Below are positions 9,196 through 46,944 of a stretch of DNA of 64,000 bases, piece after piece (position 1 is the stretch's first letter; each line of letters opens with the position of its first letter). The position numbers and the translations under genes are program-made. The notes beneath the pieces were generated by a model that made no database searches, was not told where the DNA came from, and saw nothing but the letters and a program-made list of their open reading frames with translations. The stretch comes from Macrostomum lignano (taxonomy: Eukaryota). The stretch covers positions 1-64,000 of the forward strand of contig NIVC01000896.1 in NCBI GenBank assembly GCA_002269645.1, read 5' to 3'.

Positions 9196-9689
9196 CTAGG
9201 AAATCACGTGAATTAGGGATTTCTAGGAAAAATCGTAGCTCGAAACAGACAACGCTATTGGAAGTAGACAATTCAGTGATAGTTTAATAAGATAAAGCAG
9301 TTAGGCCTAGCACAATTTGGAGAATAAATAGCGAGATTTCAACGGGGAATCACAAGGTCTACTACACTTCTTAAATCATTGCGCAAGCGTAAATTTGCGT
9401 TCGGTGAAACTTTCGTAAGTCACTTCGGCTTGTTAAGTCCCGCCGTAAATCTAAGACAGGTCGGACCTGTCGTAAGTCACTCTTTAGTTGTAAAAATGCA
9501 CAGCGCCGAATTCATTCAGTCAAAAACTTCGCATTTTACTGTATATTTCGAGTGAATTTAAAGACTGAAAATATCAAACACTAGCGAAAATTGTTAGTTT
9601 GAATTTTAAATAGCAGAAAACACCAATTGTGTTTAAGTCAGTCACGGTAGGAGTAGCTTCATTATCCGCTACCTTTCTGTTCGACCAGC

Positions 9690-10190
9690 AGCGGTGTCTT
9701 CAGCCAGTGCGGCTTCATTTTCAGAAGTTGCTTCCATGGCTAGCGGCTGATGTTCAGGTGGAAGAGGAATGGCTCTGGCTGTGGAGCACGCAGCATGCAA
9801 CAATGATGTTGCACACTTTACTCGGATTGAACTGTAAAGCTCCTCCGCTGTGATCAAGGCATCGAAATCTCGCTTTCAAAACACCGAACGCCCTCTTGAT
9901 TGGCACGCGCGTTTTGCTCAGTCGCCGGTTGAAATTTTGCTAGGAATTCGTCTGTGGATCTTTAAATGGCGTCATCAGAAACGGTCGGAGTGGGTAGCCC
10001 GCATCTCCAACTAAAAAGCCAGCGACCGTCCCATCCGCGAGGATATATTTTAGTGCAGATTGTTGAAAAATGGAGTCGTGGCTACTGCCAGGCCACGTTT
10101 GTAAATGCGAGATTGGCACTACATACGGCCTGAACATTGATCGAGTGAAATCCCTTTCTACGAGCGTATTAATGAAGATTCCACCGTCAT
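9690..10190 (-). pseudogene. Harbinger (HARBI1-like DDE) transposase, disrupted
   Basis: RKGFHSINVQAVC, WPGSSHDS, GDAGYPLRPFLMTP, FNRRLSKTRV.I.RAFGVLKARFRCL, IIVACCVLH motifs; frameshift and stop. Confidence 0.88.
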
Positions 10191-10919
10191 CGGTACTTTA
10201 TGTCCCCATACTCTGAGACTGGCTGACCGCCTTATCAAGCCGACCTGATAACTGCTCCTCAAATATACATTCGTGTCGCAACCCGGGTCGGTTTGGGTGC
10301 CCAGTCCCGAGTACAATATGTTTTACGTAATATAACAGGCGTAGTGACGCTCTGTCTGTACTTTTATGGATACGAGCAGGCGTGACGACGCTCTGCAATA
10401 ATAGTTCGATCCCTTTGGTGTTGTGACACTCAGAGTTCACGCTGCGGCTCGAGGTGGTGTGACACTCTCAAGTGCTTCTAGTTTCGATACTGTAGGTTGC
10501 ACACACTATATAAAGTAACCGGTACAGTACTACAATAATACACAATATACAACGCTGCTGTGCTGCAGTGGTCACAGTCACAGGCGTGAAGACGCTCTAG
10601 CAATGGAACCACTGCTACGGCAAGGCCTCGGAAAAGCTGAAAAGCGAATGAACTCGGTGTCTTACCGGTGCCAGAAGCTGTGAGGCTCGTTCGAATATCG
10701 TCACCACTTGACTGCTTTATTTTGCTCGCAATAAATTGAGTCTTCGCAGAAAGAGACCGTCGATACGGCTCGTTTGAGTATCGCTAGTTTAGTTTGAAGA
10801 GCTAGGCGCGGGGCGCAACGCGGGGAGCGGGCTGGGCCAGGCATGAGCACTATTTACCACATAAACAGGGTAGAGGGGCCGACAGCGAGAGAGAGAGAGA
10901 AACGCCAAACATAAGAAAT

Positions 10920-15508: not shown

Positions 15509-16154
15509 AGCGAATCGATAGCTTAAGAGCCGAGACGAGTTAAAGTACTTGACGATACCTTCTTAACTTTAGTAATAACACAAGCAAAATCCAAATTTTA
15601 TCAGCTCGAAGTCAACGACGACTGAAGTAATCCATCGTCTGCCAGTAGCATTATCTGTGCTGGGCACAATTACACAATATCGATCAACTTTTGAATCTTT
15701 AGGCTTCAATATTTGAAATTGTGAATGATCAGTTTAAGGATCAGTTTATAAAAATCCCGTCTTTTGTCGATATGAAACCTCCAGCTAACGGCATGCCCCT
15801 CCGATTTCCGGGGCATCTCGTTGATGAATGAAGTGGGGGGAGCGGTGTGCGAGGGTTGGACGGATTAGAGCTACCCCGATCAGTTTTATGCATCGATCAT
15901 TATTGATTCATCAAATACATACATACAATACTTTCATGTTGTGAAGTATTCCAGGTGTCAATTAAAGCACTTGATAGCACTCGTACGAGCTATGCTCTTT
16001 CTTGCTACTGCAAAACAAGCTGCTGGGATACTGCTCACCCAGCTAATTAAAGGTTTAGCCAATCAAATACGCCTGGGTTCTTCCAAAAAGAAGATAATTG
16101 TCAGTTTTTAGGGCAATAGGAAAATTCTTCGCCGTGATACTCGAACAATCCATC

Positions 16155-16548
16155 ATGATACTCGGCTTCTTCATCTGTTGTCTTTTCTCGGTGTGCTCAG
16201 GCAGCCTCCTCGGCAGGTCCTACATCGGCTGCTTTCGAGACAATACGGATAGAGACCTCTGCGCTCTAGACAAAGTAGCAGAGATTTCTGGTATGGAAAT
16301 CAAGTCATATAGGCCCTGTTTTATCTTCAGCTATTCCAATATGACCCACGAGCTTTGCAGCGACGTGTGCGCTCTGGGCGGATTTCCCTACATGAGTCTT
16401 CAGTACTCAAAGTTCTGTGCCTGCGGCTGGTCCTACGGTCGTCATGGACAGCTGAGCGAGTCAAGCTGCTCTATGAACTGCTCGGGAAACTCTTCACAGA
16501 TCTGCGGCAACAGCATGATAAATTCTGTGTTTGCTCTAAACTACGAAA
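16155..16548 (+). CDS. Secreted WSC + PAN-like protein, copy 4, exon 1
   Basis: MILGFFICCLFSVCSG signal; YIGCFRD..RDL...CSDVCALGGFPYMSLQYSKFCACGWSY...C.GNSSQICG..INSVF; donor gtgagt at 16549, phase 1. Confidence 0.9.
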
Positions 16549-16681
16549 GTGAGTTGTGTTGATTCCTGAACACATACAAGTTCTAATGCTATATGCAGGC
16601 ACGCACTCATACACACGCTCACACAGGGTGTACAGCGGCCCTTACTTTCTAATCGTCAGGCACGCACACTCGCTGTGTCTT

Positions 16682-17930: not shown

Positions 17931-20900
17931 TGTTGTACTTTTCGTAGTAACGAAGACGAATGCAAGATGCCGAGTTAGGAAGAGATTGTAGATGCATGCA
18001 GCGCGTATATTTTCCGCAGCGAAGTAGCTGGCTGCTATACTTAAAATATGAATAAGGCTTCACCCATAAACCATAGAACTTAAGTTCATACACAACACCC
18101 CCATATTTTAGCAATTAACCTGGAGAGAAATAAATGACTGTTTTCTATTTTGTCTAACGATCAAATAAATCAGGAATAGGTCAGCCGATCAGGGGCTTTT
18201 CGGAGCCTCTGACTTCGACGAGAAACTTGGTACTCGGGACTTTGATCGCTGGTTGTCTCCACTTCAGCAGGAGTCGTAGTCTCCATTTCCTTCTCCTTGC
18301 TGCTGCCAACATTGGCAGGTCCAGGCGAGGTAATCTCTTGTGAGTTCTCTGTAGTCCTTGGCTTGCATCAGATGCATGAACAACCCGTCCTTTGCTGTCC
18401 AAGTAGGTATTTGATCCATGAAGTCCTTGGATTTCTCTGGGACCTTGTCTGACTTTCCTTCTACGTTGATGTAGACAGGAATTGGGGTAGTTAGCGGTTT
18501 GTCCCATTCTGTAAAGGTTGCAGTGAGGCGCGTTCTTGGGCGTTGCATAAACAGTTGTGCAGCAGGAATCGCTCCTTCGGAATTCGGTGTAGTGTTCTTC
18601 GAAAGGCAGAATGATATCAACACCTTCTCACATTCGGAACCTATGTCATTACTGTCCTGCTTCAGAGTCACTTTCAACTCTTGGATAGCTCTCTCCACAA
18701 TCCCATTTGACTGGTGATGACCAGGTGGTGTTAGGACATGGTTAATTAGATTCTTCTTGAGAAATTCTGCGAACTCTTTTGATCGAAAATTGGTTCCATT
18801 GTCAGTCACAATGTCCCATGTACTTAAATGTTCGTCTGCATGCTGGAATAAGAGAGTTGGCTGTGAGATTGGACAGCTGATGTACATCAATCCACCGAGA
18901 GAAGGAGTCGATGAGAACCAAGAAGTGTTTCTCCTTGAAATATGCTATGTCCAGATGAACACGTTCGAAGAAGAACTTTGCATCTTCCCATGAATGCAGA
19001 TTTGCATTTGTTCGCTTTCTCGAATTTAGTTGGCAGGAAGGACACCTTTGAACGAAGCTATTGATCTGGGCGTCAATGTAAGGCCACCAGAAGTACTCTC
19101 GAGCTAGTCTGATCATGCGCACAATGCCCGGATGATTCTCGTGAAGAATTTGAAGAATTTCTCTGCGCATGGACTTTGGAGGCACGATTCGGATCCCTTT
19201 GAACAGAATCCCGTTTTGAATGGAGTATTCCGCCTTGGATTTGGTGTACGGAAGCAGCTGTTTAGAAATTTAGCTTGGCCAACCTTGAGTAACAAACTTC
19301 TTGATAATATCAATTTCAGGGTCTCTGGTGTTGGCGACACGCCGAAGAATTGTCCCAGAAGAAGAAAATTCTACGAGAGAGTTTACCTCCAGAAGATTGA
19401 CATCAAAATTTGAAAACGAAGTAGAAGCGTTTGTTGAAGGAATTCTGGACAGAGTAACTGCTGCGAGCATGGTGTCTCCTTTTGAGTAAGTGACAGTGTA
19501 GTCATAGGATCTGAGCAGCAATGCCCATCTCTGGAGTCTCGCAGAAACTCGGTCAGGAACTTTTGTTGTAGAGAAGATGTACTGCAAAGGTCTGTGATCA
19601 GAGATGATTGTAAAATGACGGCCTGCCAGAAATTGATGAAAATATTTTACACCCTCGATAATTGCAAGAGCCTCCCGCTCAATGTTGGCGTAGTTGGCCT
19701 CAGCCTTGGTCAAAACTCTGCTTCCCAGCCATACAACTTCTTTTTGGTTCGTGTCGTGGGACAGCACAAATCCGACTCCACTCTGAGAAGCGTCGCAGGT
19801 TAGAAACAACGGCCTTTTTATATCATAAGAAACGATTCGACCTTCCGTTACAGCAGCTTTCAGTTGGGAGAACGCACTCGAGTGAACGACAGTCCATTTC
19901 CACTGAACCCCTTTCTTTAGGAGGTAATAGAGCGGCTTGGCGATCATAGAGAAGTTCCGACAAAAAATCCCGTAGTGTCTTAAGGTGCATATAGCACTTC
20001 TCAATTGATCCCGGTCTTTTGGCTCTGACAAGTTGGATAGAGCTTCCACTCTTGCAGGATCAGGCAAAAGTTTCCCATCTCGGAGGAGAAATCCCAGAAA
20101 TGTGACTTCTTTCTTGCACTCCTGAGTCTTACGCTCATTGATCTTGAATCCATGCTTTTTCAGTTTTTCCTTGACTTGCACCAGGATCTGTCGATGCTGC
20201 TCCATTGTTTCAGTGCCTAGAATGATGTCGTCCTGATAAGAAGCAGTGCCTGGTATTCCTTTGAGCAAGATATCCATAACTTCCTGAAATATCAGTGGTG
20301 CTGCCGATATGCCAAATTGTAACTTGCGGAAGGCAAAATGTCCTACGTGGGTGGAAATACACGTAAGATCCTGACTTTCTGGCGTTAGGGGAATCTGCAA
20401 GAATGCGTCTTCGAGGTCAAGCACTGAATACACTTTCGAATTTGGGATCTTTTGAAGGATTTCTTTCAAAGTTGGCAGTCGATATCGATCTCGGTCTATC
20501 AGTCTGTTGAGAGTGACTGAATAGTCTCCATACAGTCTAATGGGTCTCTTTGATCCTTCTGGTTTCAACACAGGAACAATAGGGCACGATACCTTAGGCG
20601 AGTGAACTGGGTAGATGGTACCTGCACTTTCCAGTCTTTTCAGCTCCAGTTCAACCAAAGTTTTAATTGAGAACGGAAGGGATCTGGCAGGAAAGCACAT
20701 TCCATCGGTAGAGGCCCCGTCCTTCAGGCGAAAGCTGGCCTGGAATCTTAAATTTTCATCACACTGCACTGGATGGCACAGAAATTCGTCTACCGTCAAT
20801 AGGTTGAAGGCACGAATAAAATTTATTCCTAAAATGGCTTGACTGGATGGGTCCCCGACATATATGTCTCCGCATGCCGTTTTGCCGTTTCTCAGCTCAA

Positions 20901-22175
20901 TCGTGACGTCCTTAGCCATGCCTCGTACGGAAACTGAAGCTCCCCCGAAAACTTTGAGTGATCGAATGTCCGCGTCAACCATGTGCAATCCGGCTTGCTC
21001 TACGATGGTTACTGGCAAAATTGTTACCTGACTACCAGAGTCGACGCACATATGGACTGTGGAATCACCGATCGTGCAGACTATTTTCCAGAGTTCGTCG
21101 CATGGAGTAGCCTTGATCACCGAGTACACAGCTGAATCAGGTGGATCAGCGTCGGTTGCTTCAACTTCCGCGTACGTGACTTTCTTGCTGCCACCGATGT
21201 TGGACCTGCATGCTCTGGCAATGTGCCCGGTTTTTCCGCACTTGTGACATGTCGCATTACGGAACTTGCAGGTATTTCTAAGATGACCCGGGTTACCACA
21301 GGAATGGCAGCTAGACTTAGAATGATTCGGCGTTGTTGGCATTGGCCTGGATACCGTTGGATACTTTTGGTTGCTGCCGGTCTTCTTGTGAGTGGTTTTC
21401 TGCACTGCTGCGACGGTTTTGCTCGAATCAGTAGCTTGAGATACGGACTCCGATAAGAGACTATCCTTAACCGCAGTCTCTAGATCCAGCTTTTCCTTCA
21501 CTAGTAATTTTTGCTTCAGAGAATTATCAGCCAGTCCGAAAATATACTGAGAAAGAATTAACTCTTCTCGCAGGTTGCCGAATTCGCATTTGTTGGCCTG
21601 TGTCTTCAGTCTCTCCAAAAACTTTGTCACCGACTCACCCTGTATTTGGACCATGGTATGTAGCAGATGTCTGTCGTAGTGAAGAAGGCGCTTGGGTTTC
21701 AAGTGGCTCAGTACCGCTTCTTTGATGAAATCGAACGTACACTTTGTATCGTTTAAAATGTCTTCTGGCTGCACAAGTGTCTCAATCAGTGAAAATGCGG
21801 CATCTCCACAAGTAGCAAGTAGAACGGCTTTGCTCTGGTCATTCTTTTCCGTTGCGCTAATGTAAAAACCGAGGCGCTTGAAATACTGTTCGACATCGGG
21901 TAGCACAGCGGCATCTCCCCCAGTCGGAAGTCGAGTCCGGAAGACATCGGGATGAAGATTTGGTGACTGCAGTATCGTCCCGCGGCGAATTAAATTTTCC
22001 TCGTCGCCATGTTGTACTTTCGTAGTAACGAAGACGAATGCAAGATGCCAAGTTAGGAAGAGATCGTAGATGCATGCAGCGCGTATATTTTCCGCAGCGA
22101 AGTAGCTGGCTGCTATACTTAAAATATGAATAAGGCTTCACCCATAAACCATAGAACTTAAGTTCATACACAACA
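17931..22175 (-). mobile_element. Full-length Ty3/Gypsy (Mag-like) LTR retrotransposon in the intron of WSC copy 4
   Basis: LTRs 22010-22175 and 17931-18097 (TGTTG...CAACA; 2 substitutions + 1 indel); TSD TTAAC on both sides; PBS TGGCGACGAGG (tRNA-Ser(GCU)-like); G-rich PPT next to 3' LTR. Confidence 0.97.
18181..21906 (-). pseudogene. gag-pol polyprotein of the Gypsy element (Gag, protease, RT, RNase H, integrase)
   Basis: Two CCHC knuckles, VDSG protease, YQDD RT, TCDAS RNase H, HHCC and LIDSFS/VTDNG integrase; in-frame TAA at 19272-19270 and frameshifts near 18815 and 18436. Confidence 0.93.
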
Positions 22176-26537: not shown

Positions 26538-27381
26538 ATGCGCCCTTGGATCATCACTTGCTAACTCGGCTAAGGCAAGTTGGTGGATTCACAAGTTTTT
26601 AATAGCTTTTTTATTTGAATTTTTAGCGATTTTAACTGAGAAAAATTGCATTTTTGCTCTCTAATTTCAGTCTAAAAATTGCAGTCTCTAATTTCTCAGT
26701 ATATTTTCCTGTCTTCTTCGTCTCTTCCTTTGCATGCAATTTTCTAGCTCTTCTCTTTTCTTACATGTATAAACTCTTGAAATGAGAAAATCCGATCCGC
26801 CAGGCGAACTATCTTATCTTTTGTATCGAAGAAAACGCAACAATATGAAAACGGGAAATTTCCAAACCAAAATAGCTTCTTTAGCTAGCGGCTCCAACCC
26901 TAGAATTCTAGATATTAACCTAGCTATAATATCTATACTTGACATCTATAGTTTTATGGTCCAACATAGCGGGCTCTTTGTCTGAGTTGATTCTTCCTCG
27001 CTGGAAAAAGAACAGCCGGCAGTAAGAGAAGCTTTTTTCTGAGTTTCTTGTTCTCCACCTCTCTGAACCAAGGAAATCTAGATCTAGCAGCTGGAATACC
27101 AACTCTTTAGTGGAGGCGCTCGGACCCCGGACACTGTAGGCTGGCGCGATTCTTTAGGCTGGCGCGATTCGAGGAACACGAGCTCCTTTTTTATTACACC
27201 CAAATAAGTTATTTACGGGATCTTGTCACAAGACTTTAGCTCAATCGGACTTGCCTTGTCTGACTTGCCTCGTCTGACTTGCCTTATCCGTCAGCGATAC
27301 GCAGGGAACCTGTCAGCTGCGAGAAGTTCTTGCTTTTAAGTAGCCGCAAAACCTTCACGGCTGCATGGGGAATTGGTAGCC

Positions 27382-28471
27382 ATGCAGTCTTTCGCTATTC
27401 TGCTCCTCTGCCTCCTACCTGGGGCGCTCGCAAACCTGAACTGGGACCCGGGCATGCGCAAACAGCTGGCGGCCTACTGGAACCCCCAAAGTCCCTACTT
27501 CTTTGAAAGCTGTGCCGCCTCTAGCACTGGAAGGTGTTGCAACAGCCTCAACAGGGGCTTCTACACGCTATCGTACGACGCCGAGTCAAACCGAGACACG
27601 CCGTGCAAGCCGAACACCGGGGCCGTCATCAACGACCCGAAGCCGGTGTTCCGGCCGATCCTCGGCGAGCGGTGCCCCTTCTACTTCTACTGGTCAAACC
27701 AGGGCTTCGCGAGACTGACGCTGAGCATGCGCGACTGGAGCGTGCAAACTCGGTCGTACATCGGCATCCAGGAAAATCAAAACACCGTGTGCTCTGGTCT
27801 GCCGCCCCTGCGAATCGACCCCTTCAAGATTCGCTACCTGGAGCTGGAGCTGCGTGCCAAGGTGTGCTACAGGGGCGACCGCAGGTACGCGCACGGCCAC
27901 GTGTCGCACTACCTCACCTTCTACAACGATCAGGAGCGGTACGAGCACGCAATCCGGCTCAACATCTTCCAGTTCTGGAGTGCCCCGCGTGGTGCCAAGC
28001 CTCCATTCTATTGGAACCTCAAGACATTCGACGAGCAGTCGATCGACCCGCATCCCAACCTACGAGCGAACGTGTGGAACCTGCATGGCAAGCTGTGGGG
28101 CTTCAGCCGCTACGACGCCTGGGAGGACCCGGACCCCGGGTGTAGGTGAGTCGCCAAAGCTCTCACACTCACCCCGTTGGGTTTAAATCGATCGCAGCAA
28201 TCACTGAACGCAACAATTCGCTCAATCGCGGGCGCTTTTCTCTATGCTCCATCTTGTCCATCGTATTTGTAGGTCGCCGATTGAGAACGTGCCGTGGCGC
28301 AAGTTCCACATCAACGTCCAGTCACTGATTCACGGCCTGGCCAGGGACGGCCACGTGCCGCTGTCCTACTTCCGGTCGGCCAAGTGGGTGGGCAGCATCG
28401 TGACCGGCGTGGAGGTGTGGGGCCAGGCCTCAGTAACCGTGGACGCGCGCAACTACCGTCTGATTGGCTGA
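27382..28471 (+). CDS. Secreted protein of unknown family, GH12-like motifs (exons 27382-28145, 28273-28471; 320 aa)
   Basis: Signal peptide MQSFAILLLCLLPGALA; GC3-rich codons; phase-2 intron gtgagt...ttgtag; 764+199 nt = 321 codons; AATAAA at 28516; paralog has the same intron position. Confidence 0.88.
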
Positions 28472-28967
28472 TTGCCGTTGCACCTGAATTGTAGCTGTTT
28501 GGGTTACGTGATATAAATAAACTAGTGAATGAAGACGCTGTCGTCTTCAAAGGTGGGACGATGGTTTATTATGTCCATTATTGTTTATGGTTATGACCTA
28601 TTTATTTAACCCAAATTAAGAACTAATTAAGAAGCTATATTGTGTCTCTATCTTTAATGGCTATTACATTTTACAAATTAAGAACTTAAAAGCTGCTTGG
28701 GCTATGATTATAATTTAATTTAAACAAAGTTTATGCATAGCTGTTTAAATATATTAATAAAACTACTTATAAAACGGATATAAATTGCAGGCATATATTT
28801 ACTGCTAAAAAACATCTTAGTGACCAATATTTCCAAACCCTAAATACCTTACGCCAAATATCCAAACTAAATGGTGCACAATTCAGTCTCGACGAAACTG
28901 TAGTCTCGTGCAGCAGGCTATCCCACCAAGTACCACTAGAGTATTTATAGGACGTAAAACTCAAACG

Positions 28968-29152
28968 TGGGTTGTTGTTGGGAGTGTTGTTGTTGTTGGG
29001 GTTGTTGTTATTGTTGAGTAGGGGTTGTTGTTGAGTAGGGGTTGTTGTTGTTGGGGTTGTTGTTGTTGTTGGGTAGGGGTTGTTGTTAGGGTTGTTGTTG
29101 TTGTTGGGTAGGGGTTGTTGTTAGGGTTGTTGTTGTTGTTGGGTGGGGGTTG
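28968..29152. repeat. (GTT)n / GGGGTT low-complexity tract
   Basis: Direct inspection. Confidence 0.9.
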
Positions 29153-30788: not shown

Positions 30789-31606
30789 TTAGTGAAGGGG
30801 AGGCAAAGACAAAGACAAAGACAAACCGAGTGTGGCGATGGCGAGGCAGCGAAAAGCCAGAGGATGCAACCTCAGTCGATGGTATTTATTTCATGACTTG
30901 TTAAAACGAATTAAACTGATTAAAAATTATAAATTAGCGAGGAAAAAAAATTCAACCGCGAGCAACCCCGCGCAGCCACAAAGGTGGCGGCCTAAATAGG
31001 CACGCGCACGCACCAACGCACCACCACCCCACCAGACAGCCAGCACCCAACAGCCCCCCCTTGCACTAACAGCGTTAGCCCTCGCGGGCTCGCGCAAACC
31101 GGTGCATTAGTGAAGGGAGGCAAAGACAAAGACAAAGACAAACCGAGTGTGGCGATGGCGAGCAGCCGAAAAGCCAGAGGATGCAACCCCAAGGCTAAAC
31201 AAACAAATGAATGAACGAAGGAGAGAATTTACGAAACGGGTGGAAATAAGGCTAGGGATAAGAACGGAAATAAAACTTTGAACACAAGCAAAAGTTATCA
31301 AAGGCAGCTCTCGCTAAAAGCACCAGCAAAACGCGAACCAGCCCGCACAGAATCAGCAGATTGAAGGTAGGCAGTCACAGCATCACTTCGCCAGTCACCG
31401 ATGCACTTCACCTCTTGAACAGATAGTCCGAGACGGTAGGCCCAGGTGGCACCACCTCTGCGCAGGCTGTGCGCTGAGAAAGAACGAGCGTCCTGCTCAG
31501 CAGTTGCTAGGCAGCGCTTGAGGAACCTGTCGAATCTTGAGGCAGACAGGACAACAGAGGATCCGCTCGCCAACTGGTAGGAGAACACAGGCTGCCTGCT
31601 CCCCAC
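30789..31606 (-). mobile_element. 3' end of an Ngaro/DIRS-type tyrosine-recombinase retrotransposon
   Basis: YR C-terminus FSAHSLRRGGAT...GDWRSDAVTAY (31606-31298), followed by near-identical ~82-bp direct repeats 31107-31188 and 30789-30871 separated by 235 bp. Confidence 0.8.
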
Positions 31607-31654
31607 AATTTTTGTGACAAAAACTCACCGCAATTTTCGTGACAAACCCCCGCA

Positions 31655-32100
31655 ATTTGTCACTCAAAATCAAACTGTCTGTGTCGTATTATAGCAGTTT
31701 GTTTTATCCCCATATCTTACCTTCAAATCATAGAAGAACTTGTACATTAAACGCTTTGATTCATCTAATATAGCCACATCTGTGAAAATTGGCTTGGCTA
31801 ATTTCGTTCTAGTTTTATAAAATAGGATCGCAACCAAGTGATTATTAAATCGGTGCAGCTCCTTAAAAGTAGGTTTCGATATACTAGTTAAAATAACATC
31901 CGACTCGGATGACTTAACAAGCTTCAAGTTTGCTCTTTTTCGTTCGTTCTCTAAACTCTTGCCGTAGACAGAATTATTGGCCAGTTTGAACAGGTCCTTA
32001 TCAAAATTATTAGTAGCTTCTGTTCTAAACTGGTTGTTCTTATCAATATAGGGTTTCATCCACGTTTCTTCTGTGAATGCAAGTGCTCTGTAACCTTACA
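31655..32100 (-). pseudogene. Protein-primed family B DNA polymerase fragment (Polinton/Maverick-like)
   Basis: WMKPYIDKN...NNFDKDLFKLANNSVYGKSLEN...KPIFT..ILDESK..MY.F.Y and a frameshifted DTDSL motif. Confidence 0.85.
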
Positions 32101-32490
32101 ACTTAGGCAAATAAAATACTGCAGCAGTTTATAATCAATTTTTATACCGCGTTTTGTTGTTTAGATTTTGTGTGAGTTTCTTGGTATGTTTTTTTCCTTT
32201 TAGACAGGTACCAAGTTCCATCCGAGCTTTCCATCATTTTGGACAATGAATATTCTCTGGAAAGGGTGGAAAGTCCGAGAAATAGTCGTGCAGTTCTGTT
32301 GGGATCTCTACATCCACCTCATAAATAGCAGGTGTTAAGAAGTTCCAGTTAGTAAAAATTTCGGGGAGTTTTTTTTTGTCAGGAAAAATTTCTGGGAGTT
32401 TTTTTTGTCAGGAAAAGTTGCGGGGAGGGGGTACTTTTTTGTCTCGAAAAATTGCGGGGGGAGTCTGTGCTAGGATTCCCCTCATGCATA

Positions 32491-33193
32491 CTACTCCGGC
32501 CCGATCGCAAGTACGCGCACGGCCAGGTGGTTCACTACCTTAGCTTCTGGAACAATCAGCAGCAGTACGGGCACTCCATCCGGCTCAACATCTTCCAGTT
32601 CTCGAGTGCTCTGCCTGGCGCCAGGCCGCCAGACTACTGGCACCGGAAGACCTTCGACGAGCAGTCCATCGACCCGAACCCCAGAATTCGCTCCAACGTG
32701 TGGAACCTGCATGGCAAGCTGTGTGGCTTCAGCCGCTACGACGCTTAGGAGGACCCGGACCCCGGGTGCAGGTGAATCCTGGCTTTTGACAGATTCCTCC
32801 GTCGTGCAGAAAGTGCGAATGAAGCTGCCTGATGTTGGACGGAATGCACTCGCTATGCTGCATGAACTGAGCATGAAGAGCAACTGTCACAGATTTGGTG
32901 GCCTTTGGGTGCACTTCATCCGCCGGTTACCTTCTGTTTTTCCTGAAGAACCTGACGAACCATCAGCTATACCAGACTCCGTTGCTTGCCTTCGCAGGTC
33001 GCCAGTAGAGCACGCGCCGTGGCGCAAGTTCCGCATCGACGTCCAAGCGCTGATCCAAGCGCCAGGGACGGCCCACGTGCCGCTGTCCTACTTCCGATCC
33101 GCCAAGTGGGTGGGCAGCATCGTGGCGGGGGTGGAGGTCTGGGGCGAGGCCTCTGGGACCGTGGACGCGCACAACTACCGCCTGATTGGCTGA
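32491..33193 (+). pseudogene. 5'-truncated paralog of the 27382 gene (exons ~32491-32771, 32998-33193)
   Basis: DRKYAHGQVVHYLSFWN...KWVGSIVAGVEVWG...NYRLIG*; TGG>TAG stop at 32746-32748; same intron position; N-terminal part (to about residue 165) missing. Confidence 0.88.
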
Positions 33194-33839
33194 TACGCTG
33201 TGCGGCTAGCCAGATGAGATGAATAGGAGTACAATGAGGCCACGAGCTGGTTCCGGTTCAATTTTGAGTTCTTCTGCTTTCCTCATGATCGCGAACCCCT
33301 CCAGAAAAGTCGAGATGATGAAGATAAAAATTGCAGGTGTGTAAGCTGTTGGCAACAACCTTATTGCTGTGGTTTGGGAGACAGCGGGCTGGCAGACCTG
33401 AGACGGCCTCTGCGGGGCGTCGTTCACGCCTACCTGCGTAGAGAGGCCGGCTCCCTTGAGAGCTCTTGAGCTCGGCGTAAGGGCGCATGGCGCCCCTTGA
33501 CCGACTTTCTGTCTCTGGGCTCCTCTCAGGCCTCACACGGCCTCTCTCAGCTCCCAGGGGATGCAAGCCGCATCGGGACACTGCCGGGACGCGAACCAGC
33601 GGAGTACAAGCCGGCCAACGAGAAAAATTCAAGGCCTGACAGCACGCGCACCAACCTTCCGTGATTACACAGTCGAGACAATCGGGCGCCTATGAAAATT
33701 TGATGCTCAAAGTGAGAATGTAGGAAATCAGTTAAACGGTAAATGCGCTACTAAGTGCGACGACCTGGTGATACTAAGGGCAGCTGTACATGTACCAGCA
33801 TAGGTCATGTATATTTCGTAAGCAATTTGTACAGTAAAC

Positions 33840-35999
33840 GCTTCCCACTCTCGCAGAACCAGCACGCTTTCCGCGCGGGCAGGTCTACCGAGAGTGCCCT
33901 CCATGTCATTGTTGACTTCCTAGAGAGGGCCGTTCTTGGCAGCGGCTTTGCTCTCTCGCTTTTTCTGGACATTGAGGGGGCCTTCGACAACGTCATCTTC
34001 GAGGCCTTTTGCAGTGCCCTGGAATCCAGGGCCACGCACCCTCACCTTGTCCGGTGGATCATGTTCATGATCCGGAACCGCACTGTTGTGGCCCACCTGA
34101 ACGGCAGCTCTCTTTCGGCGCCTGTCCAAAAAGGGGGCCCCCAGGGCGGAGTTCTCACCCCCGTTCTCTGGAACATGGTCATGGATGAGCTGCTTTGCAG
34201 TGATCTCCACGACCCCATTCTCAAGGTGGGCTATGCCGATGACGTGACCGCGATCTGCGCGGGCCCCTCGGTTGACACCATCAGAGATCTTCTGCAGGGC
34301 TTTCTGGGACGAGCGGAGCGTTGGGCAAACCAATGTGGTCTTAGACTCTCAGAGTCGAAAACTACAGCGGTCATGTTTACCAGCAAACTGCTCTGGACCA
34401 TTAAGCCCCTCACCCTCTATGGAAAGAACATTTCCATGGAGAAGCAGGTCCGCTGCCTGGGCCTCACTCTGGACCACAGGCTCAACTGGACTCCGCACAT
34501 TCAAACTAAAGCCAAAAAGCCCTGGCTGTCCTGGCTCAGATCAGGCGCGCCGTGGGCACCACCTGGGGGCTCACCCCCAGGAAGCTGTGGTGGATTTACA
34601 CTGCAATCATCCGCCCCTCGATCAGTTACGCCAGCCTCGTGTGGGCTAGCGGTCTGGGCGTCAAGAGTAACCTCGACGCTCTCTACAAAATCCAGGGCAG
34701 AGCCTGCCGCATGACTATGGGCGCTCCACCCTCTACTCCTTTTGAAGGCATGAATGCCTTCCTCTGTGCCCCTCCTTTGGATATATATATCAAAGGAGAG
34801 GCGGCGAAGAGCACCCGGCGTCTTCTGGATGCTGGGGTGGCCTTCAAGAAAGTGCGGGCCTTTAAGAAGCGGTCGCTTATCCCGCACTCTGACCTCTGCC
34901 TCAAGGCTCTAGAAGAATGTGGCGGGCTCAACATCCTCTCGGACTCGATCCCAGCCACCCTTCTCCTGAGCCAAAGGTATAAGGTCACTATTCAGCCTCG
35001 ACATGAGGCGAGTGACAGCTGGAGCGATTCTGAAGTCCACTGTTACACTGACGGCTCTATGAAGCATGGTCTTTCAGGCTTCGGAGCGTGCGTCTTCTTC
35101 AAGGGAGAAGTGGCGTGGAGCTACTCCCAGCACACTGGGCTCAACTCCAGTGTTTTTCAGAGCGAGGTGCTTGCCATCAGCTCCTGCGCGGCAGAACTGC
35201 GCCGAAGGCAGCTTAGCGGTCGGAAGCTTATTTTTCACTCTGACAGCCAAGCAGCCCTTCGGGCCCTCTGCCGCTGCACCACCAGCTCCAGGTCCGTCCT
35301 GGACTGCAACACCCAGCTCAACGGGCTTGCGCTAGGCAACCAGGTAGAGCTCAGATGGATCCCGGGCCACGCCGGTTTCCTCGGCAACGAGCACGCCGAC
35401 CTGCTGGCCAAGGCTGGCTCCGCCGGCGCGCTGCTGGGGCCGGGCCCGGGGGCCCCCATCCCCGCCTCGGTGATCAACTCCCGCGTTAAGCGCTGGGCTG
35501 ACTCCGAGCATCTCCGCAGGTGGCACGACACCCGGAATTGTAGGCAATCCCGTGCGGCCGTCCCCTGCCCCTCCCCTCTCCTGCGTAGAGCCCTCCTCAG
35601 GCTCAACCGCAGAGACCTCAGAGCAGTTAGCATGGCCCTCTCCGGGCATGGCTGCTTCTCTCGCCACCGCTTCCTTCAGGGCCAGCATTTTATCTGCCAC
35701 TGCCCGGTTTTCACCAGGGCCAGGCTCACTCACCTCGGGCCAAACCCGGTTCTCTCCGACGTTTGCAGGCCCGAGAGCATCCCGCTGCTCGTCCGGTACC
35801 TCAGGGACACGGGACGAGCCGATTTCTTCCCCACTGTCGGTGAGGAGGATCGCGCTGCAGGCGAGACCGACGGGTCCCCCTGAGCGACTTCACTTCAACG
35901 GAAGTCATTGGTCGCCAGGGGCTAGCGGAATGGGCGGTCTCCTCCGCCTCCCCGCTGCATCCGCCGGACGCCCCCTGCAGCTAAGTCAAGTAAGTCAAG
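33840..35999 (+). mobile_element. 5'-truncated non-LTR retrotransposon with RT + RNase H (I/LOA-like group)
   Basis: QHAFRAGRST, FLDIEGAFD, PQGGVL, YADD, YTDGS, WIPGH motifs; 1-nt frameshift at ~34520; taagtcaag tandem tail. Confidence 0.92.
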
Positions 36000-40057: not shown

Positions 40058-40752
40058 TGTTGGCAAACTTTTTACCTCAAGGGCCAGATTGAAAATTCAG
40101 TGCCTGGCCAGAGTAGGGAGAGAGGAGAGGGAATCGAGAAGAGAAATAGGGGAAAAGAGAGGCGAAAAAATAATGGGGAAGAGAGTAGACAAGAGGAGAG
40201 ATGAAATAGAAGAGGAGAGAGCTGGAGAGGAGAGGAGAGGAGAGAGGAGGGAAGGGGGAAAGAATGGAGAAGAAAATGAAGATGAGAGGAGAGGAGAGAG
40301 GTGAGGATGAGGAAATGAGTGGATAGGAAAGAGGTGAGGATGAGGAGATGAGGGAATAGGAGAGAGGTGAGGAGATGAAAGGAGAGGAGAGAGGTGAGGA
40401 GATGAAAGGATAGGAGAGAGGTGAGGATGAGGAGATGAAAGGATAGGAGAGAGGTGAGGATGAGGAGATGAAAGGATAGGAGAGAGGTGAGGAGATGAAA
40501 GGATAGGAGAGAGGTGAGGAGATGAGAGGATAGGAGAGAGGTAAGGAGATGAGAGGATAGGAGAGAGGTGAGGAGATAGAGGATAGGAGAGAGATGAGAG
40601 ATGAGAGGATAGGAGAGAGGTGAGAGAGCCGAGAAGAGACAAAAGACCGAGCAGGCCGGATTGCTATTGTGAAGATTCAAAGGATCCAAGAGCCGGATAG
40701 AGAGGCTTTTCCGGCTGCATGTGGCCCGCGGACCGGAGTATGCCGACCCCTG
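40058..40752 (-). mobile_element. CT/GA-rich hAT-type MITE copy with an expanded ~30-bp internal tandem repeat
   Basis: Reverse complement of the 22210 copy at both ends (tgccgacccctg; tttacctcaagggccagat). Confidence 0.75.
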
Positions 40753-41083
40753 CTTTACAATGACGTAAATCTGGGGACAGTCTGTCGAATGTGATTAGCT
40801 AAATTAAAAATACACTTTTGCTGAATATAGCTTTAATACGACCTAAATTATCATTTGAACATTCACTGTCGGTTTCACCAATGCTTGATTCTTCATTTTA
40901 ATGTAAAAAATAAAGCGCTGTAGCTCTTTAATCTGACATATTTGTATCGAAGTATTTGGAGCAATCTACAATACTATTTTTTAGATCATAATATAGAACC
41001 TGGCTTACAATATCACTATTATTCATGTAAAACTAGTTATGCATCACAAAGTACGGACTTAATTGAAGGAACAAAAGACCATA

Positions 41084-42081
41084 ATGTCAATAATTGACGA
41101 ATTGCAAAAGGCAGCACGCCACGGCAACAACGAACAGGTCAAGCAGCTGATCGCCAAGGGTGCCAACATTCACGAGTGTGATACAGCCCGTTTGACGGCC
41201 TTGCACAGGGCCACGGCCAATGGCCACATCGCTGTGATGACCACACTCATTGAGGCTGGCGCCGACATAAATTCTGAGGAGGATTTAGGTCGGACGCCTA
41301 TCTATTGCGCCTGTCAGAACGGCTTGTTACCGGCAGTGAACTTTCTCATCGAGAACAGAGCCGACGTGAATCGACCGCGCAAGAATGGCAGATCGCCGCT
41401 CTATGCTGCTGCAGCCAATGGCCATATTCTGGTGGTGGAGACCTTGCTTAATGCTGGGGCCCTTGTGGACCTGCCATCCAGCACAGGCTGCTCACCGCTG
41501 TACGCGGCCAGTCAAGAGGGTCACGTGGCCGTAGTGGAGCATCTGATTGGCGCAGGCGCTGATGCCAAGCGGCGGAACAACGATGGCTCAACTGCGCTGC
41601 ACGTCGCCAGCTGGTGCGGTCGCATAGCCGTAATTCAATCTCTCATTGACGCCAAGGTTGACGTCGACGCACAAGACGATTCGGGAAAGACGCCGTTGCA
41701 CGAGGCGTGCCTCGCCAAGAACGTGAGCGTCATTCGAATGCTCATCGACGCAGGCGCTGATGTTAATCGACAGGACAAGAAGGGCTGCACGCCGCTGTTC
41801 TTTGCTTCTTCAGTCGTGTGCCAGCCTGCAGTTCGCATTTTGCTGAGTAACGGTGCTCGACCTCAGCTTGCGTCCATTCGGCCTCCATTCTCGCCTCTGC
41901 AGGTTGCTTGCTTCATCGGATCGGGTGAAATTGCCAAAGCCATCCTGCAGCACAGTCCAGAGGCTGCAGAGCGTCTGCCTGCATCGTGTACATCGCTTGC
42001 TAAAGAATGTCTTGAGCAAGTCCCTAAACAAGCGTTGCCAATGGGTGAAGACATAAAGGACGAGCTGGGAGCAAAGGCTCA
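41084..42081 (+). CDS. Ankyrin-repeat + Mab-21/cGAS-like receptor (cGLR), exon 1 (about 9 ankyrin repeats)
   Basis: Repeated T/S-P/A-L-H/Y..A...G...V..LI..GADVN units; donor gtgagt at 42082, phase 2. Confidence 0.92.
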
Positions 42082-42989
42082 GTGAGTAGTGGTTAATTGC
42101 ATTGACATTCGTTGTAAATATGTGTTCTTTTTTTCAAATTATTTTCAAGTTATTGTCTCTGACTCTGACTGTACAGGGTTGAACGCTTGTCTGCAAACTT
42201 TTGCTGGATTCAGACCTTGGCTGGTTCCCATTACCCAATATTTCACGTCTTCGAGTTTTCATATCTCCAAAATTTCACATCTTTGAAATCTCAAATCCTC
42301 AAAATTTACATCCCTGAATTTCACATTCCCTAATTTTTTCACATCCCTGAAATTTTACATCTCCGAACTTGGCATCTCCAAGATTTCACATCTCTGAAAT
42401 TTCAGACCGTCAAAATTTCACATCTGTGAGCCATTGATTTGCTATAGAGCGCCCACCCCATTTTTCCGGCTCCGTACGTCAGCCGGCTTTCTCTCTCTAA
42501 CTCTCGCCCCCTTATCGGTACTCGTAGTAAGCAAAGTGTACATTTACGACCACCACCCCACGCAATGCAGTAGCCGACTAAAAATTAAATAAATAGCATC
42601 GTCTCGCCCACTGTGGCTTTCGTACTTCTTCGTGCAACTGCCAAATCATGCATTGAACTCTTACAACATCCACGAAATTTCACTTTCCCAAAATTTCAGA
42701 TAAAGTTTCTGATTTAAGCCCATAGACTATTTCGTGCCTTACGTAAGTTATTTCAACACTAGGACTAGCTTAAGAAGAGCCTAGCAGAGGGCATCAATGG
42801 TTTGTTGTCTGTGGCCAAACCAAATTAAATCATGTGGTAGAAATCGTGCCTGCCGTGTCGTAACAGATCAACTCAATCAAAGTAGACAATCGACCCGCAC
42901 AACTCCAAATTGACCCCCCCCCAAGCACAGAACTCACCAGTTGTCACTACCAATCACACCTTTAGACCAGAGTTTCTCTTCGGACGTCG

Positions 42990-43510: not shown

Positions 43511-43620
43511 CTCTACTTTTGCTTCAGACCAATGAAATAAATAAAGGGAAATAACTTTCATGTAAACTTAAATTTGTCCTGGATCCCTATCTCAGTGGTA
43601 CACAATACTTTACTTTACAG

Positions 43621-43973
43621 AAGCGATGACGTCACAGACTCCCAGTTGAGCAACAGTCTGCACTCGCAATTCAAAAAAGCCGGATTCACTTGTCAAATGT
43701 CAGCTTTCCAGTCTGCATGCAGTGACGTCATGCAACAAATTGAGCAGAAGAGGCGAGACTGGGAAGACATCTTTGTCGTTGGCAGCTTCTCAGAGGGCTG
43801 GGGAAACAGTTTGAGCAGGCTGATCGGCAAGACGGATGTTGAGTCTGACATTGATGTGGCGGAGTTCTTTCCTGGCAGAATGTACCACCTTCGCGGCAGA
43901 TGTCGGTGCGAAAGTGTCAAGGAGGAGGATCTGGTTACCTACGATAATGGTCACGTGACGGTGACTGGACTAA
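43621..43973 (+). CDS. ANK-cGLR exon 2 (nucleotidyltransferase active-site motif)
   Basis: Acceptor tttacag; VVGSFSEGWGNSLSRLIGKTDVESDIDV; donor gtgagt, phase 1. Confidence 0.88.
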
Positions 43974-44265
43974 GTGAGTCATTCACGGGCTGCGTTGTAT
44001 TGCTGTTTCCGAAGGACAAAGACTTGATATTTGTAATCTAGCTACCAGAAATGAAAGATTTGATCGTCCAACAGATGGTGGAAGGCAGCTGGTGGGTGAA
44101 TTGCCTGTGACGCCGTCTGCCCAGAGCAAACAACATGCATACAGATACAGTAGCCGACATGTATCGAAGCAAATACACAAGGGCTACTGTATATGAATGC
44201 AGTACACCGGTACAAACTCACACAGGGGTGTGCACTTGCCCTGACAATTTTCATCGTCAGGCAGA

Positions 44266-44406
44266 GTAACACATCCACTGTGCCTTAGAGATGGGCCCAT
44301 ATGAGCATACGAACGGCTCAAGTAGCTCCTCGGTGACGCCCTAAATGAATGTGGCGCGACCGAGATTCGAACCCAAGACATACAAAGCAGCCGCGCTAAC
44401 CGCTAG
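44266..44406 (-). mobile_element. tRNA-derived SINE (same family as 48810)
   Basis: B box GGTTCGAATC; body gggcgt.accga.ggagctacttgagccgtt shared with the 48810 copy. Confidence 0.75.
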
Positions 44407-44539
44407 ATTATGGCTTTATAGATTATGGCTTTCATTGCCTTTTTGTCTTTGTCGAAAGAGAAATGGTAGCAGGGTAGCACTGGAAAACACGAAAAGATAA
44501 AAATTGAAATTTTTACCCCTGTGCCTTCACTGCTTCCAG

Positions 44540-45358
44540 CCAACAACCCAGCCCAGCCGGAATACGGCTCCTGCCTGAGACCGGCTTTTGATTTTGTCAC
44601 AGCCTACCGTTGCTGCAGCTATCCGCACGTCGAGGTGGTCGAAAACCCAAATCCCGATTCTCACCTCAGCGACTCACTGCTCAAATCGCTGACCCAATGC
44701 GTCCGCGAATCGAACTGCCACCTAGTGACCGCGGCGCCACCGGGCCAGGGCGGCCAGCTGCTTCGTGTAAGCACCACTTTCTTGGAAAGGCTCACCCTTC
44801 GCAGCCTCAGCGATGTGCAGGGTCAGCTCTTCATCCTGCTCAAATACCTCATCAAGAAGGTGCTGTCTGAGACTGTGAACGGTCTGAAGACCTACCACGC
44901 CAAGAGTCTTCTGTTCTACATGCTGGAAGAGACGGCACCGGAGGACTGGCAGCCTGGAAGCTTGGTGGCTCTTACGCGACAAGCACTCCAGCTGCTGCTA
45001 CGCAACATCAAGAGCAGCGGTAAAAGGAACAGCGAGTGCATGCCCCACTTCTTCATGCGCGATGCCATCGTGTACTTTAAGAGCGGACACAGTTCGAAGA
45101 AGGAGATTAAAGAAGCTATTAATGGCACCATCGATAACCTGCCGCGTCACCTTGCCCACTTCAAGGACTTCACCCTGAAGCCTGTGGACAGGCAGCCTCC
45201 GACATTCTACTTTCAACCATTCATGAACATTCCATGGATCAGGGTGACAGCTGGGTACAGCTCGGACGCTCCGCTGCAGTACCACGAGATATACGACTGT
45301 GTTCGCGATATCCTGGTCCGGCTGGCGCGCCAGGACACCCCCGAGCAGGCGGTGACAG
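44540..45358 (+). CDS. ANK-cGLR exon 3 (third acidic residue and Mab-21 helical lobe)
   Basis: FDFVTAYRCCSYP; RVSTTFLERL; FILLKYL; LKTYHAKSLLFYMLE...W; MPHFF; acceptor cttccag, donor gtgaaa, phase 1. Confidence 0.9.
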
Positions 45359-45589
45359 GTGAAATGATGATTGAATATTGTCTGCCGGCTCAGTATGTGT
45401 CTCATAGAATAATGCATTGCGTAGAGTATGAAGTATTCAATTCTTTAGCCTGTTTGCTTCTAGTTTGCTGAGGAGGCAAATGAAACCCGCTAGGAACGGT
45501 TCAAACCGATGCGTATGTCACTTCCCCCCTCACAGCTGCCTTATTTAGCCATTCTATCCACCCAAAACCTTGCATAAGCAGCGCGCCCT

Positions 45590-46345
45590 TATCTTCCCTC
45601 TCCCTCTCTCTCCCCTTCTCTCTCCCCCTCTTCCCTCCCTCTCTCCTTCCCTTCTCTCGTGCTCTCTCTCCACTGTCTCCCCCTTTTTTCCCCTCTCTCC
45701 CCCTCTCTCCCATCTCTCCCTCTCTCCCCCTCTCTCTCCCCTCTCTCCCATCTCTCCCTCTCTCCCCCTCTCTCCCCCTCTCTCCCATCTCTCCTTGTCT
45801 CCCCTCTCTCCCCTCTCTCCCATCTCTCCTTGTCTCCCCCTCTCTCCCCTCTCTCCCATCTCTCCCTCTCTCCCACTCTCTCCCCTCTCTCCCTCTCTCT
45901 CCCATCTCTCCCCCTCTCTCCCATCTCTCCCTCTCTCCCCCTCTCTCCCATCTCTCCCTCTCCCTCCTCTTTTTCCTCTCCCCATCTCTCCCTTTTGTCC
46001 CCCTTCTCTCCCCTCTCTCTCCTCTTTCTCCACCTCTCCCCTTCTCTCCCCGCTCTCCCTCTCTCCCTCTCTCCCCCTCTCTCCCCCTCTCTCCCATCTC
46101 TCCCTCTCTCCCACTCTCTCCCTCTCTCCCTCTCTCTCCCATCTCTCCCCTTTCTCCCATCTCTCCCTCTCTCCCCTCTCTCCCCCTCTCTCCCATCTCT
46201 CCCTCTCTCCCCCTCTCTCCCATCTCTCCCTCTCCCTCCTCTCCTTCCTCTCCCCATCTCTCCCTTTTGTCCCCCTTCTCTCCCCTCTCTCTCCTCTTTC
46301 TCCACCTCTCCCCTTCTCTCCCCGCTCTCCCTCTCTCTCCTCTGT
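45590..46345. repeat. ~750-bp homopyrimidine (C/T) minisatellite in intron 3
   Basis: Units such as ctctctccccctctctcccat; + strand is almost purine-free. Confidence 0.95.
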
Positions 46346-46369
46346 CTATGTCTCTGTCTATCTCTGCAG

Positions 46370-46944
46370 GCATCATTGACAGACTGCCCGATTGCGCCCA
46401 AACTGTCCGGGAAACTCTGCGCGCCATCGCCTTTGTCAAATACAACAAAAAAGATCACGCCATTCAAGTGTTGCGCAACATGAGAGGTCATTCTGTCAGC
46501 CGGCGAATCAATTCAGCGGATGTAACGGGCCAGCAAACCGTGACAGAGTTTGTGTGGCACCATCTCACCATCTCTGACTCCGCTTGGAAGTTCTGCTTCT
46601 TCATCAATGAACGACCAACTCTTCATTTTCTTAGCCAGTTTATTGCACACCTGTTTCCAGTCATCTTCAACGATTGTCACCAGTATTTCTTCTTCAACTT
46701 TGACGCCCTGAAGATGTGTCTGATGCTGGATTTAGTCGGTGATGTAGCGGACGATGCAAAGCACTGGTTCAAAGAGGTCTTGCTCAGCGAGGACGCCGAT
46801 GTTCAAGAACTGATCATGGTGATGCAGCACTGCCGGGACATCCCGCTTTTGCTCAGCGTCATTCGCAAGCACAACAGTGTCATTCTTGACCATCACGATT
46901 CAAGGGACAAACTGCTTGAGCTGATGGAGGAATTGGTGAGCTAA
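46370..46944 (+). CDS. ANK-cGLR exon 4 (C-terminal helical region, stop TAA); spliced protein 914 aa
   Basis: Acceptor tctctgcag; open frame to TAA; 998+353+819+575 = 2745 nt = 915 codons. Confidence 0.8.

Follow-up and report, generated by a model that had tools for sequence, protein, structure and literature searches.

The closest structural matches to the protein described here, which is encoded by a gene of the flatworm Macrostomum lignano, a free-living diatom feeder, are the glycoside hydrolase family 12 (GH12) endoglucanases and xyloglucanases, among them Cel12A from Thermotoga maritima (3AMH/3O7O), Cel12A from Trichoderma reesei (1H8V), and the enzyme from Humicola grisea (1OLR). Enzymes of this family carry a nucleophile motif, E-L-M-I-W (E-[LI]-M-I-W; E116 in T. 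reesei Cel12A), that the flatworm protein lacks, and an acid/base motif, G-T-E-P-F (E200 in T. reesei Cel12A), where the family of the flatworm protein has G-x-E-x-W-G. The GH11 xylanases, which are the partners of GH12 in clan GH-C, show the same type of jelly-roll topology and require two conserved Glu residues; as matches to the flatworm protein they rank below GH12, and no sequence relation to them was seen. In animals, one report describes GH12-like genes of dorylaimid nematodes (Xiphinema index) as horizontally acquired and places them among the plant cell-wall degrading enzymes of plant parasites (PMC5664137).

The gene in question lies at positions 27382 to 28471 on the + strand of the window, by which we mean the whole 64,000-nucleotide (nt) stretch of contig NIVC01000896.1 (assembly GCA_002269645.1) that was analyzed. 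An original prediction had read its product as a secreted, GH12-like glycanase of possible horizontal origin, with E188 in the role of nucleophile and E302 in the acid/base region. Our analysis indicates that the gene was probably acquired horizontally and that its product is probably a new type of protein that cuts sugar chains or binds sugars, and we assign a probability of roughly 0.5 to the reading that this protein is an extracellular glycanase or transglycosylase with a non-canonical second chemistry.

A two-exon gene encodes a secreted single-domain protein

The gene model comprises the following features, all of which are on the + strand of the window.

27382 to 28145, + strand: exon 1, starting with the ATG at 27382; codons 1 to 254 plus 2 nt of codon 255; signal peptide and most of the jelly-roll domain
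27382 to 27432, + strand: putative signal peptide, amino acids 1 to 17, MQSFAILLLCLLPGALA, with NLNW after it; judged by eye from the sequence
27943 to 27945, + strand: codon for E188, within RYE188HAIRLN; the earlier nucleophile candidate, in a column that varies across the family
28146 to 28272, + strand: the single intron, 127 nt, GT-AG, phase 2, within codon 255 and immediately 3′ of the conserved Cys254 codon
28273 to 28471, + strand: exon 2; codons 255 to 320 and the TGA stop; helix 270–279 and final strands 291–305 and 307–319
28412 to 28414, + strand: codon for E302, within TGVE302VW (motif G-x-E-x-W-G); candidate general acid/base or binding-cleft residue
28516 to 28521, + strand: polyadenylation signal AATAAA, 45 nt 3′ of the stop

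The spliced coding sequence of 963 nt yields a protein of 320 amino acids that is 100% identical over its full length to the NCBI entry [quoted passage not shown] and the gene resides on a 343-kb contig. Aromatic residues (W, F, and Y) account for 14.3% of the product, which has nine Cys residues, and the GC content at third codon positions (GC3) is 0.83 for the gene versus 0.60 to 0.67 for neighboring host open reading frames (ORFs), with an overall GC of 0.45 for the window. The two-exon model and the database identity thereby bear out the intact, aromatic-rich, GC3-rich gene with one late intron that had been proposed, and both motifs, RYE188HAIRLN and TGVE302VW, lie where they had been placed. 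Secretion likewise agrees with the signal-peptide-like N terminus read from the sequence. The conserved domain begins directly after the signal peptide at N20-W-D22-P-G, which corresponds to the family motif G-F/W-D-P-G in an alignment of 30 family members (alignment A2). The mature product is a secreted, disulfide-stabilized, single-domain protein of about 303 residues.

Short tandem duplications were also observed in the putative promoter, at 27125–27170 and 27240–27290 (ctgtaggctggcgcgattc twice and a gacttgcct-type unit three times), 90 to 250 bp upstream of the ATG. A simple repeat, (GGGGTTGTTGTT)n, occupies 28960–29150 just 3′ of the gene.

The predicted fold is of the GH11/GH12 type

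The structure was modeled with AlphaFold2 on alignment A2, and a single-sequence model (predicted local distance difference test score, pLDDT, of 35) was not used. The alignment-based model has a pLDDT of 83.3 and a predicted template modeling score (pTM) of 0.86, with 172 residues at a pLDDT of 90 or above. It is almost entirely β, with long strands at 124–131, 152–163, 170–182, and 187–200, one long helix at 270–279, and final strands at 291–305 and 307–319.

When this model was compared with the PDB by using Foldseek, the top matches (E 3.6e-6 to 1e-4, probability 1.00) were GH12 structures, which made up all of the first 18 matches and about 40 of the 50 matches listed. The best match was T. 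maritima Cel12A (3o7o_A, E 3.6e-6), and others included the H. grisea (1olr), B. licheniformis (2jem), and T. reesei (1h8v) enzymes. Among the remaining matches, we take 5tvv and the 7xna fusion to be GH11-derived and 7ung_XA, 7som_A, and 6u42_3W to be CFAP20-type jelly rolls. A Foldseek search of BFVD returned no match at E ≤ 1e-3. The β-jelly roll that had been anticipated from AlphaFold and Foldseek was thus recovered, with GH12 structures as the top PDB matches of the model at template modeling (TM) scores below 0.5. Because the TM-scores are below this value, fold identity is probable rather than proven. Judged from the model, the fold is probably a GH11/GH12-type (clan GH-C-like) β-jelly roll in a distant, enlarged variant, which is a match of fold type and not a close superposition.

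The protein belongs to an undescribed, mainly prokaryotic family

An exhaustive HMMER (phmmer) scan of 1.84 billion cluster representatives (15 billion source proteins) recovered 58 relatives at E ≤ 1e-3 and 26 at E ≤ 1e-10, and the best full-length relative is 35% identical to the query. As the original prediction had it, the curated libraries do not recognize the protein: Pfam hmmscan with the query gave no family at E ≤ 10, NCBIfam gave 0 matches, and PHROGs gave 0 for the domain. Searches of the PDB by sequence produced no match (best E 1.3 with phmmer and 2 with a profile), a word-indexed homologue search returned only the query itself or, with profile A1, only two proteins, and scans of IMG/VR yielded no match. 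Across 185,579 species genomes searched with profile A4, the only matches were a Pacearchaeota locus and a 93%-identical contig of a "Saccharibacteria" metagenome-assembled genome.

The named members, all annotated as hypothetical proteins, come from DPANN archaea (Candidatus [Ca.] Pacearchaeota, HOI97355.1), bacteria of the candidate phyla radiation (CPR; Ca. Paceibacterota, MFA6094904.1), and Planktothrix agardhii/rubescens, where they form a cluster of 63 members found in complete genomes. M. lignano was the only named eukaryote matched in the exhaustive scan. One further member (P0039, at 8001–9236 of L001) is situated on a 252-kb phage-like scaffold, between a gene for a DnaB-type helicase and genes of unknown function; polB, a RecA-like gene, a ligase, a dCMP deaminase, an intein, and Tad6 are nearby, and no lysis or tail module is obvious. 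The family is an undescribed one, most of whose members come from uncultured prokaryotes and one from a phage-like scaffold.

Most relatives are longer than the query; they carry a signal or membrane anchor at the N terminus and extensions that vary among them at the C terminus. A PG_binding_1 domain is present in two of them (P0005 and P0049) and below the Pfam cut-off in a third (P0043), and one relative has a PEGA domain. In a JGI metagenome protein of 773 amino acids (P0044), the family domain at approximately residues 156–440 is fused to a complete GH10 xylanase at residues 455–766 (PF00331, E 2e-82), and nothing else ties the family directly to a known carbohydrate-active enzyme. The Planktothrix copy (7001–8221 of L008/L009) is chromosomal and conserved and resides 48 bp downstream of YceG/MltG in a RuvX-DUF1292-YceG cluster, and the Pacearchaeota copy adjoins a 1545-amino-acid protein with a Melibiase-domain match.

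Eukaryote-like copies share an intron and point to an old transfer

Short matches at 43 to 58% identity proved to be exon fragments on long, gene-poor ENA contigs with 38 to 40% GC, and such fragments, found on at least 12 contigs, suggest a multi-copy family. The copies to which we refer below are these.

L005, 4973 to 7628 (− strand) and 7998 to 10368 (+ strand): divergent pair, each copy with at least three introns
L013: copies syntenic to the L005 locus, from another sample
L014, 6728 to 10925: one copy with at least five introns

The last intron of the minus-strand L005 copy coincides exactly in position and phase with that of M. lignano, interrupting the codon that follows the conserved Cys254 (TGC AG/GT). 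The exon break seen by tblastn in the L014 copy falls at the same residue, and the splice site of the plus-strand L005 copy is ambiguous. The L014 copy is the most M. lignano-like of the eukaryote-like copies in the exon for residues 50–104 (63%), and C53 and C137, which co-occur in the M. lignano and L014 copies only, may form an extra disulfide. Contig L013 also bears an ORF with the Pfam domain "HTH_animal," and therefore the host organism is probably an animal. A blastn comparison of L005 with the window revealed no shared DNA.

The M. lignano protein and the reconstructed L005 protein are 50% identical and group as a single clade, placed among prokaryotic and phage-like members, in a neighbor-joining tree (without support values); the closest of those members is 31 to 35% identical. 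Relatives are overwhelmingly non-animal and show no broad vertical distribution in animals, the other named members being archaeal or bacterial. The most likely source of the gene is a prokaryote or virus, from which it would have passed horizontally into an animal lineage; both the distribution of named members and the tree position fit the microbial origin first suggested for it. The transfer appears to be old because the intron after Cys254 is shared, and because M. lignano is the only named eukaryote among the 15 billion source proteins, a single old transfer is the parsimonious reading.

The second copy in the window is a pseudogene

A tblastn search of the window with the protein located only one further copy, which is 72 to 74% identical in amino acid sequence to the intact gene. 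This copy and the sequences immediately upstream of it are as follows.

31298 to 31606, − strand: tyrosine-recombinase fragment (Phage_integrase, E 1.2e-5), directly upstream of the pseudogene
31670 to 32059, − strand: ORF with the motif NSVYGKSLEN and no Pfam match, upstream of the pseudogene
32488 to 33190, + strand: 5′-truncated pseudogene copy; coding parts 32488–32772 and 32996–33190, equivalent to amino acids ~161–320

The copy starts at about codon 161, where it abuts transposon-derived sequence, and it has an in-frame TAG at 32746–32748 replacing W247, a Gly at position 188, and an intron at the same position and in the same phase as that of the intact gene (TGC AG/GT). The diverged paralog that had been noted therefore exists as a second copy and not as an intact paralogous gene, given its 5′ truncation and in-frame stop. 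Because it is a pseudogene remnant, it says little on constraint at E188. The transposon-like remnant next to it, which spans 31298–32470, may be the insertion that took away the 5′ half of the copy, and the NSVYGKSLEN sequence is presumably a polB-like motif. T-rich short direct repeats were observed at 32350–32450, after the transposon-like remnant.

E302 is conserved, and E188 is not

Residues that are near-invariant in alignment A2 are G20 (N in the query), D22, C44, C52, G59, Y61, F102, W104, Y126, G128, Q130, N132, G139, R158, C162, Y177, C254, G281, G300, E302, and G305. Because of strand periodicity and co-linearity with GH12, we suggest that D22, Y61, F102, W104, Y126, Q130, N132, R158, Y177, E302, and W304, all near-invariant throughout the family, line a glycan-binding cleft.

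Comparisons with GH12 employed the T. reesei Cel12A sequence, which was validated by its match to 1h8v_A (E 5e-145), and a profile built from 38 verified PF01670 proteins. A permissive local hhalign comparison was co-linear from end to end at a non-significant P of 0.17. It pairs G300, E302, and W304 with GH12 residues G198, E200, and F202, the helix at 270–281 with the single GH12 helix, and F102 and W104 with the invariant W48 and W50. It also pairs C44 and C75 with C4 and C32, the two Cys residues that are invariant among the aligned GH12 sequences; in T. reesei Cel12A, a disulfide joins this pair. The nucleophile E116 falls on A190 in this alignment, and E188 pairs with D114, which precedes E116 by two residues. 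Positions invariant in both families number 12 versus 7.8 expected (p = 0.054, treated as non-significant). These correspondences with GH12 are suggestive only.

E302 is a Glu in 29 of the 30 aligned members and is kept as G-P-E-x-x-G in the most distant subfamily. In the model it sits on the penultimate strand (291–305), after the helix at 270–279, where it would occupy the position of the GH12 general acid/base. This conservation, the strand position, and the non-significant alignment to E200 all favor the placement of E302 in the acid/base region by the original prediction. Also as it had noted, an equivalent of the Y-D-I-W aspartate (GH12 Asp99) is not evident.

The proposed nucleophile fared differently. 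Column 188 of the 30-member alignment has 18 Gly, two Phe, two His, and one Glu, the Glu being that of the query alone, and among the eukaryote-like copies this position is Glu in the four L005/L013 copies and the P0029 cluster, Pro in L014/P0013, and Ser in P0098. Column 190 has nine Thr, six Glu, six Gln, and three Ser out of 30, with Ala in the query, and column 194 has 12 Asp and 11 Asn. Because column 188 is mostly Gly and is variable even in the eukaryote-like copies, E188 is not a conserved nucleophile, and the permissive alignment, by putting the nucleophile on A190, also speaks against the role assigned to it. Any significance of E188 may be limited to one sub-clade at most. Moreover, because the canonical nucleophile is not conserved (column 190 is T/E/Q and column 188 mostly G), we conclude that the classical retaining GH12 type does not apply to this family. 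Other conserved acids are D22, E42 (23 of 29), and D249 (25 of 30).

A proposed glycanase with non-canonical chemistry and its alternatives

On the favored reading of an extracellular glycanase or transglycosylase, the proton would be donated by E302, and the second catalytic group would be non-canonical, supplied either by the substrate or by another carboxylate, for which E42, D22, and D249 are examples. A polysaccharide of microbial or algal envelopes might be the target, and the worm could employ the protein for digestion or surface defense. Transfer from a prokaryote or virus would have preceded the split of M. lignano from at least one other, probably animal, lineage, after which introns would have been gained, the gene duplicated, and a GC3-rich codon profile acquired. 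We count in favor of this reading the carbohydrate- and cell-wall-related partners of the relatives, namely the GH10 fusion, PG_binding_1, the YceG/MltG adjacency, and the Melibiase-domain neighbor.

Several results weigh against the same reading. PF01670 was not matched by any of the 30 family members at E ≤ 10, and hhalign comparisons of the family profile from A2 gave a probability of 0.07% with T. reesei Cel12A and of 0.7% (E 0.08) with the 38-sequence GH12 profile. The structural superposition is loose, with TM-scores of 0.31 to 0.37 on the query and at most 0.48 on the target, root mean square deviations of 7 to 13 Å, and identities of 7 to 14%. No conserved second carboxylate is placed opposite E302 (distances in the model were not measured). 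The GH10 fusion fits a non-catalytic binding module equally well, the DPANN archaeal members argue against a strictly peptidoglycan-directed role, and the prokaryotic gene neighborhoods are heterogeneous, the four other contexts having no consistent pattern. Literature searches on the locus tag, on horizontal transfer in M. lignano, and on Macrostomum glycoside hydrolases returned nothing relevant, including nothing on expression or activity. At the sequence level, the protein falls outside GH12. The proposed GH12 kinship accordingly holds for the jelly-roll fold type, for which GH12 structures are the top Foldseek matches, and does not hold for membership by sequence or profile, given the lack of a PF01670 match and hhalign probabilities below 1%.

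Two narrower assignments were considered and set aside. A firm call of peptidoglycan hydrolase, to which the MltG adjacency and PG_binding_1 fusions might lead, was rejected because five prokaryotic neighborhoods gave no consistent operon. A polysaccharide lyase, based on the conserved Arg, Gln/Asn, and Tyr residues, was not adopted, as the listed structural matches are nearly all of the GH11/12 type and not lyase jelly rolls.

We tentatively entertain a further possibility, that the GH11/GH12 structural clan contains a third, unrecognized family, of which the flatworm protein would be the founding member in animals. Such a family would have kept the acid/base Glu and would use a non-canonical second catalytic element, with either the substrate assisting or a carboxylate contributed by a different strand or loop. 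The family would be distributed among DPANN archaea, CPR bacteria, cyanobacteria, and large phages and would have been captured by a macrostomid ancestor, in which it then expanded and gained introns.

A non-catalytic glycan binder, lectin or carbohydrate-binding module (CBM)-like, on a GH-C-type jelly roll is a somewhat doubtful alternative that nevertheless deserves serious weight, and it could entail a pattern-recognition, mucus, or adhesion role in the worm. Sugar would then be bound, with no cleavage, by the conserved aromatic residues, the Gln, Asn, and Arg residues, and E302. The canonical nucleophile is absent across the family, the domain accompanies a GH10 xylanase as an accessory module in one relative, others are associated with PG_binding_1 or PEGA, and jelly rolls of this kind can be without enzyme activity, as the CFAP20 matches exemplify. 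However, retention of a single Glu at the acid/base position, in 29 of 30 members as well as the distant subfamily, fits catalysis better, and most members are stand-alone secreted domains of about 300 amino acids, which is large for a CBM.

The original prediction in its literal form is unlikely. Under it, E188 would serve as nucleophile and E302 as acid/base of a divergent, retaining GH12-type glycanase, in the eukaryotic clade if not beyond it. E188 does open the strand at 187–200, which is co-linear with the GH12 nucleophile strand, and it is on the same face as the canonical site; E188, R192, and N194 are also retained in the four intron-bearing L005/L013 copies and the P0029 cluster. Set against this are the Gly at position 188 in 18 of the 30 members, the Pro in L014, the Ser in P0098, and the Gly in the pseudogene, together with the alignment of the nucleophile position to A190 and the absence of a PF01670 signal.

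About equally unlikely is a jelly-roll protein with no carbohydrate function (toxin-like, protease-inhibitory, or structural) whose GH12 likeness is generic β-sandwich similarity: TM-scores below 0.5, the lack of a significant profile match, and the inconsistent operon context would suit it, but the PDB matches are highly specific, being nearly all of the GH12/GH11 type as opposed to lectins, capsids, or GH16, the Glu strand is among the motifs that correspond co-linearly, and relatives have carbohydrate and cell-wall domain partners.

The gene is embedded in host DNA

Other features of the window are listed here.

16098 to 16562, + strand: WSC-domain ORF (PF01822, E 2e-15), about 11 kb upstream of the gene, with a retrotransposon in between
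18264 to 21906, − strand: long terminal repeat (LTR) retrotransposon pol/gag ORFs; an 878-amino-acid ORF with zinc knuckle, aspartyl protease, reverse transcriptase, and RNase H, and an adjoining integrase-like ORF of 208 amino acids
33755 to 35883, + strand: non-LTR retrotransposon ORF (RVT_1, RNase_H), beginning about 560 bp 3′ of the pseudogene
41063 to 42085, + strand: ankyrin-repeat ORF of 340 amino acids that looks intact; ordinary host gene
43574 to 45471, + strand: Mab-21-like ORF (Mab-21_C, E 1.6e-6); ordinary host gene
53079 to 54051, − strand: non-LTR retrotransposon ORF, a related RNase H-bearing copy on the strand opposite to that of 33755–35883

Because the gene stands among retrotransposons and ankyrin, Mab-21-like, and WSC ORFs, it is part of the host DNA; the DNA around it in the window is typical animal DNA, and contamination is excluded. 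The gene has the features of a eukaryotic gene integrated in host DNA, namely a GT-AG intron, an AATAAA signal, a putative signal peptide, and flanks of retrotransposons and host genes on a 343-kb contig. As for the glycan-binding WSC genes that the original prediction had placed beside the gene, the WSC ORF lies at a distance of 11 kb, and nothing connects the two.

Low-complexity tracts at 40072–40689 and 45501–46491, which are Ser/Leu/Pro-rich and Gly/Glu/Arg-rich, generate spurious long ORFs on both strands. A tetranucleotide repeat at approximately 46950–47300 is translated as (DRQT)n in the ORF at 46880–47413.

Comparison with known systems

If the predicted fold and catalysis by E302 hold, the protein would represent an unnamed carbohydrate-active family in which a known scaffold with altered catalytic machinery has been domesticated by an animal. 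The hosts of this family include poorly understood episymbiotic microbes (DPANN, CPR) and a bloom-forming cyanobacterium, and the locus would add another prokaryote-to-animal transfer, in this case in a free-living flatworm. M. lignano is a genetic model with RNA interference and transgenesis, and the physiological role of the protein is thus directly testable. Should the third-family reading be true, it would define a CAZy-type family of its own, whose specificity would also be new and might be directed at polysaccharides of microbial envelopes or algae. A protein that only binds glycans or is unrelated to them would leave this as an orphan family of modest interest.

With the GH12 enzymes, the flatworm protein shares a secreted, single-domain β-jelly roll in which a C-terminal helix is followed by the Glu strand (G-x-E-x-aromatic) and then by the last strand. 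It differs from them in being about 100 residues longer and in having three family-conserved Cys pairs. The CFAP20-type ciliary proteins offer a likeness of fold type only and score lower (TM-score on the query of 0.21 to 0.25); unlike the flatworm protein, CFAP20 is intracellular, has about 185 amino acids, and is without a signal peptide or disulfides.

An animal GH12 had been put forward as notable, but it would not stand without precedent, as GH12-like genes gained by transfer are reported from dorylaimid nematodes (PMC5664137). The Xiphinema index genes are a precedent for a microbial GH-C-type glycanase gene in an animal. The flatworm protein belongs to a separate, unnamed family. What is known is the scaffold and an animal precedent of the GH-C type; what is new is a family that is absent from Pfam, NCBIfam, PHROGs, and the PDB, that differs in the defining catalytic feature, and that has an unusual distribution.

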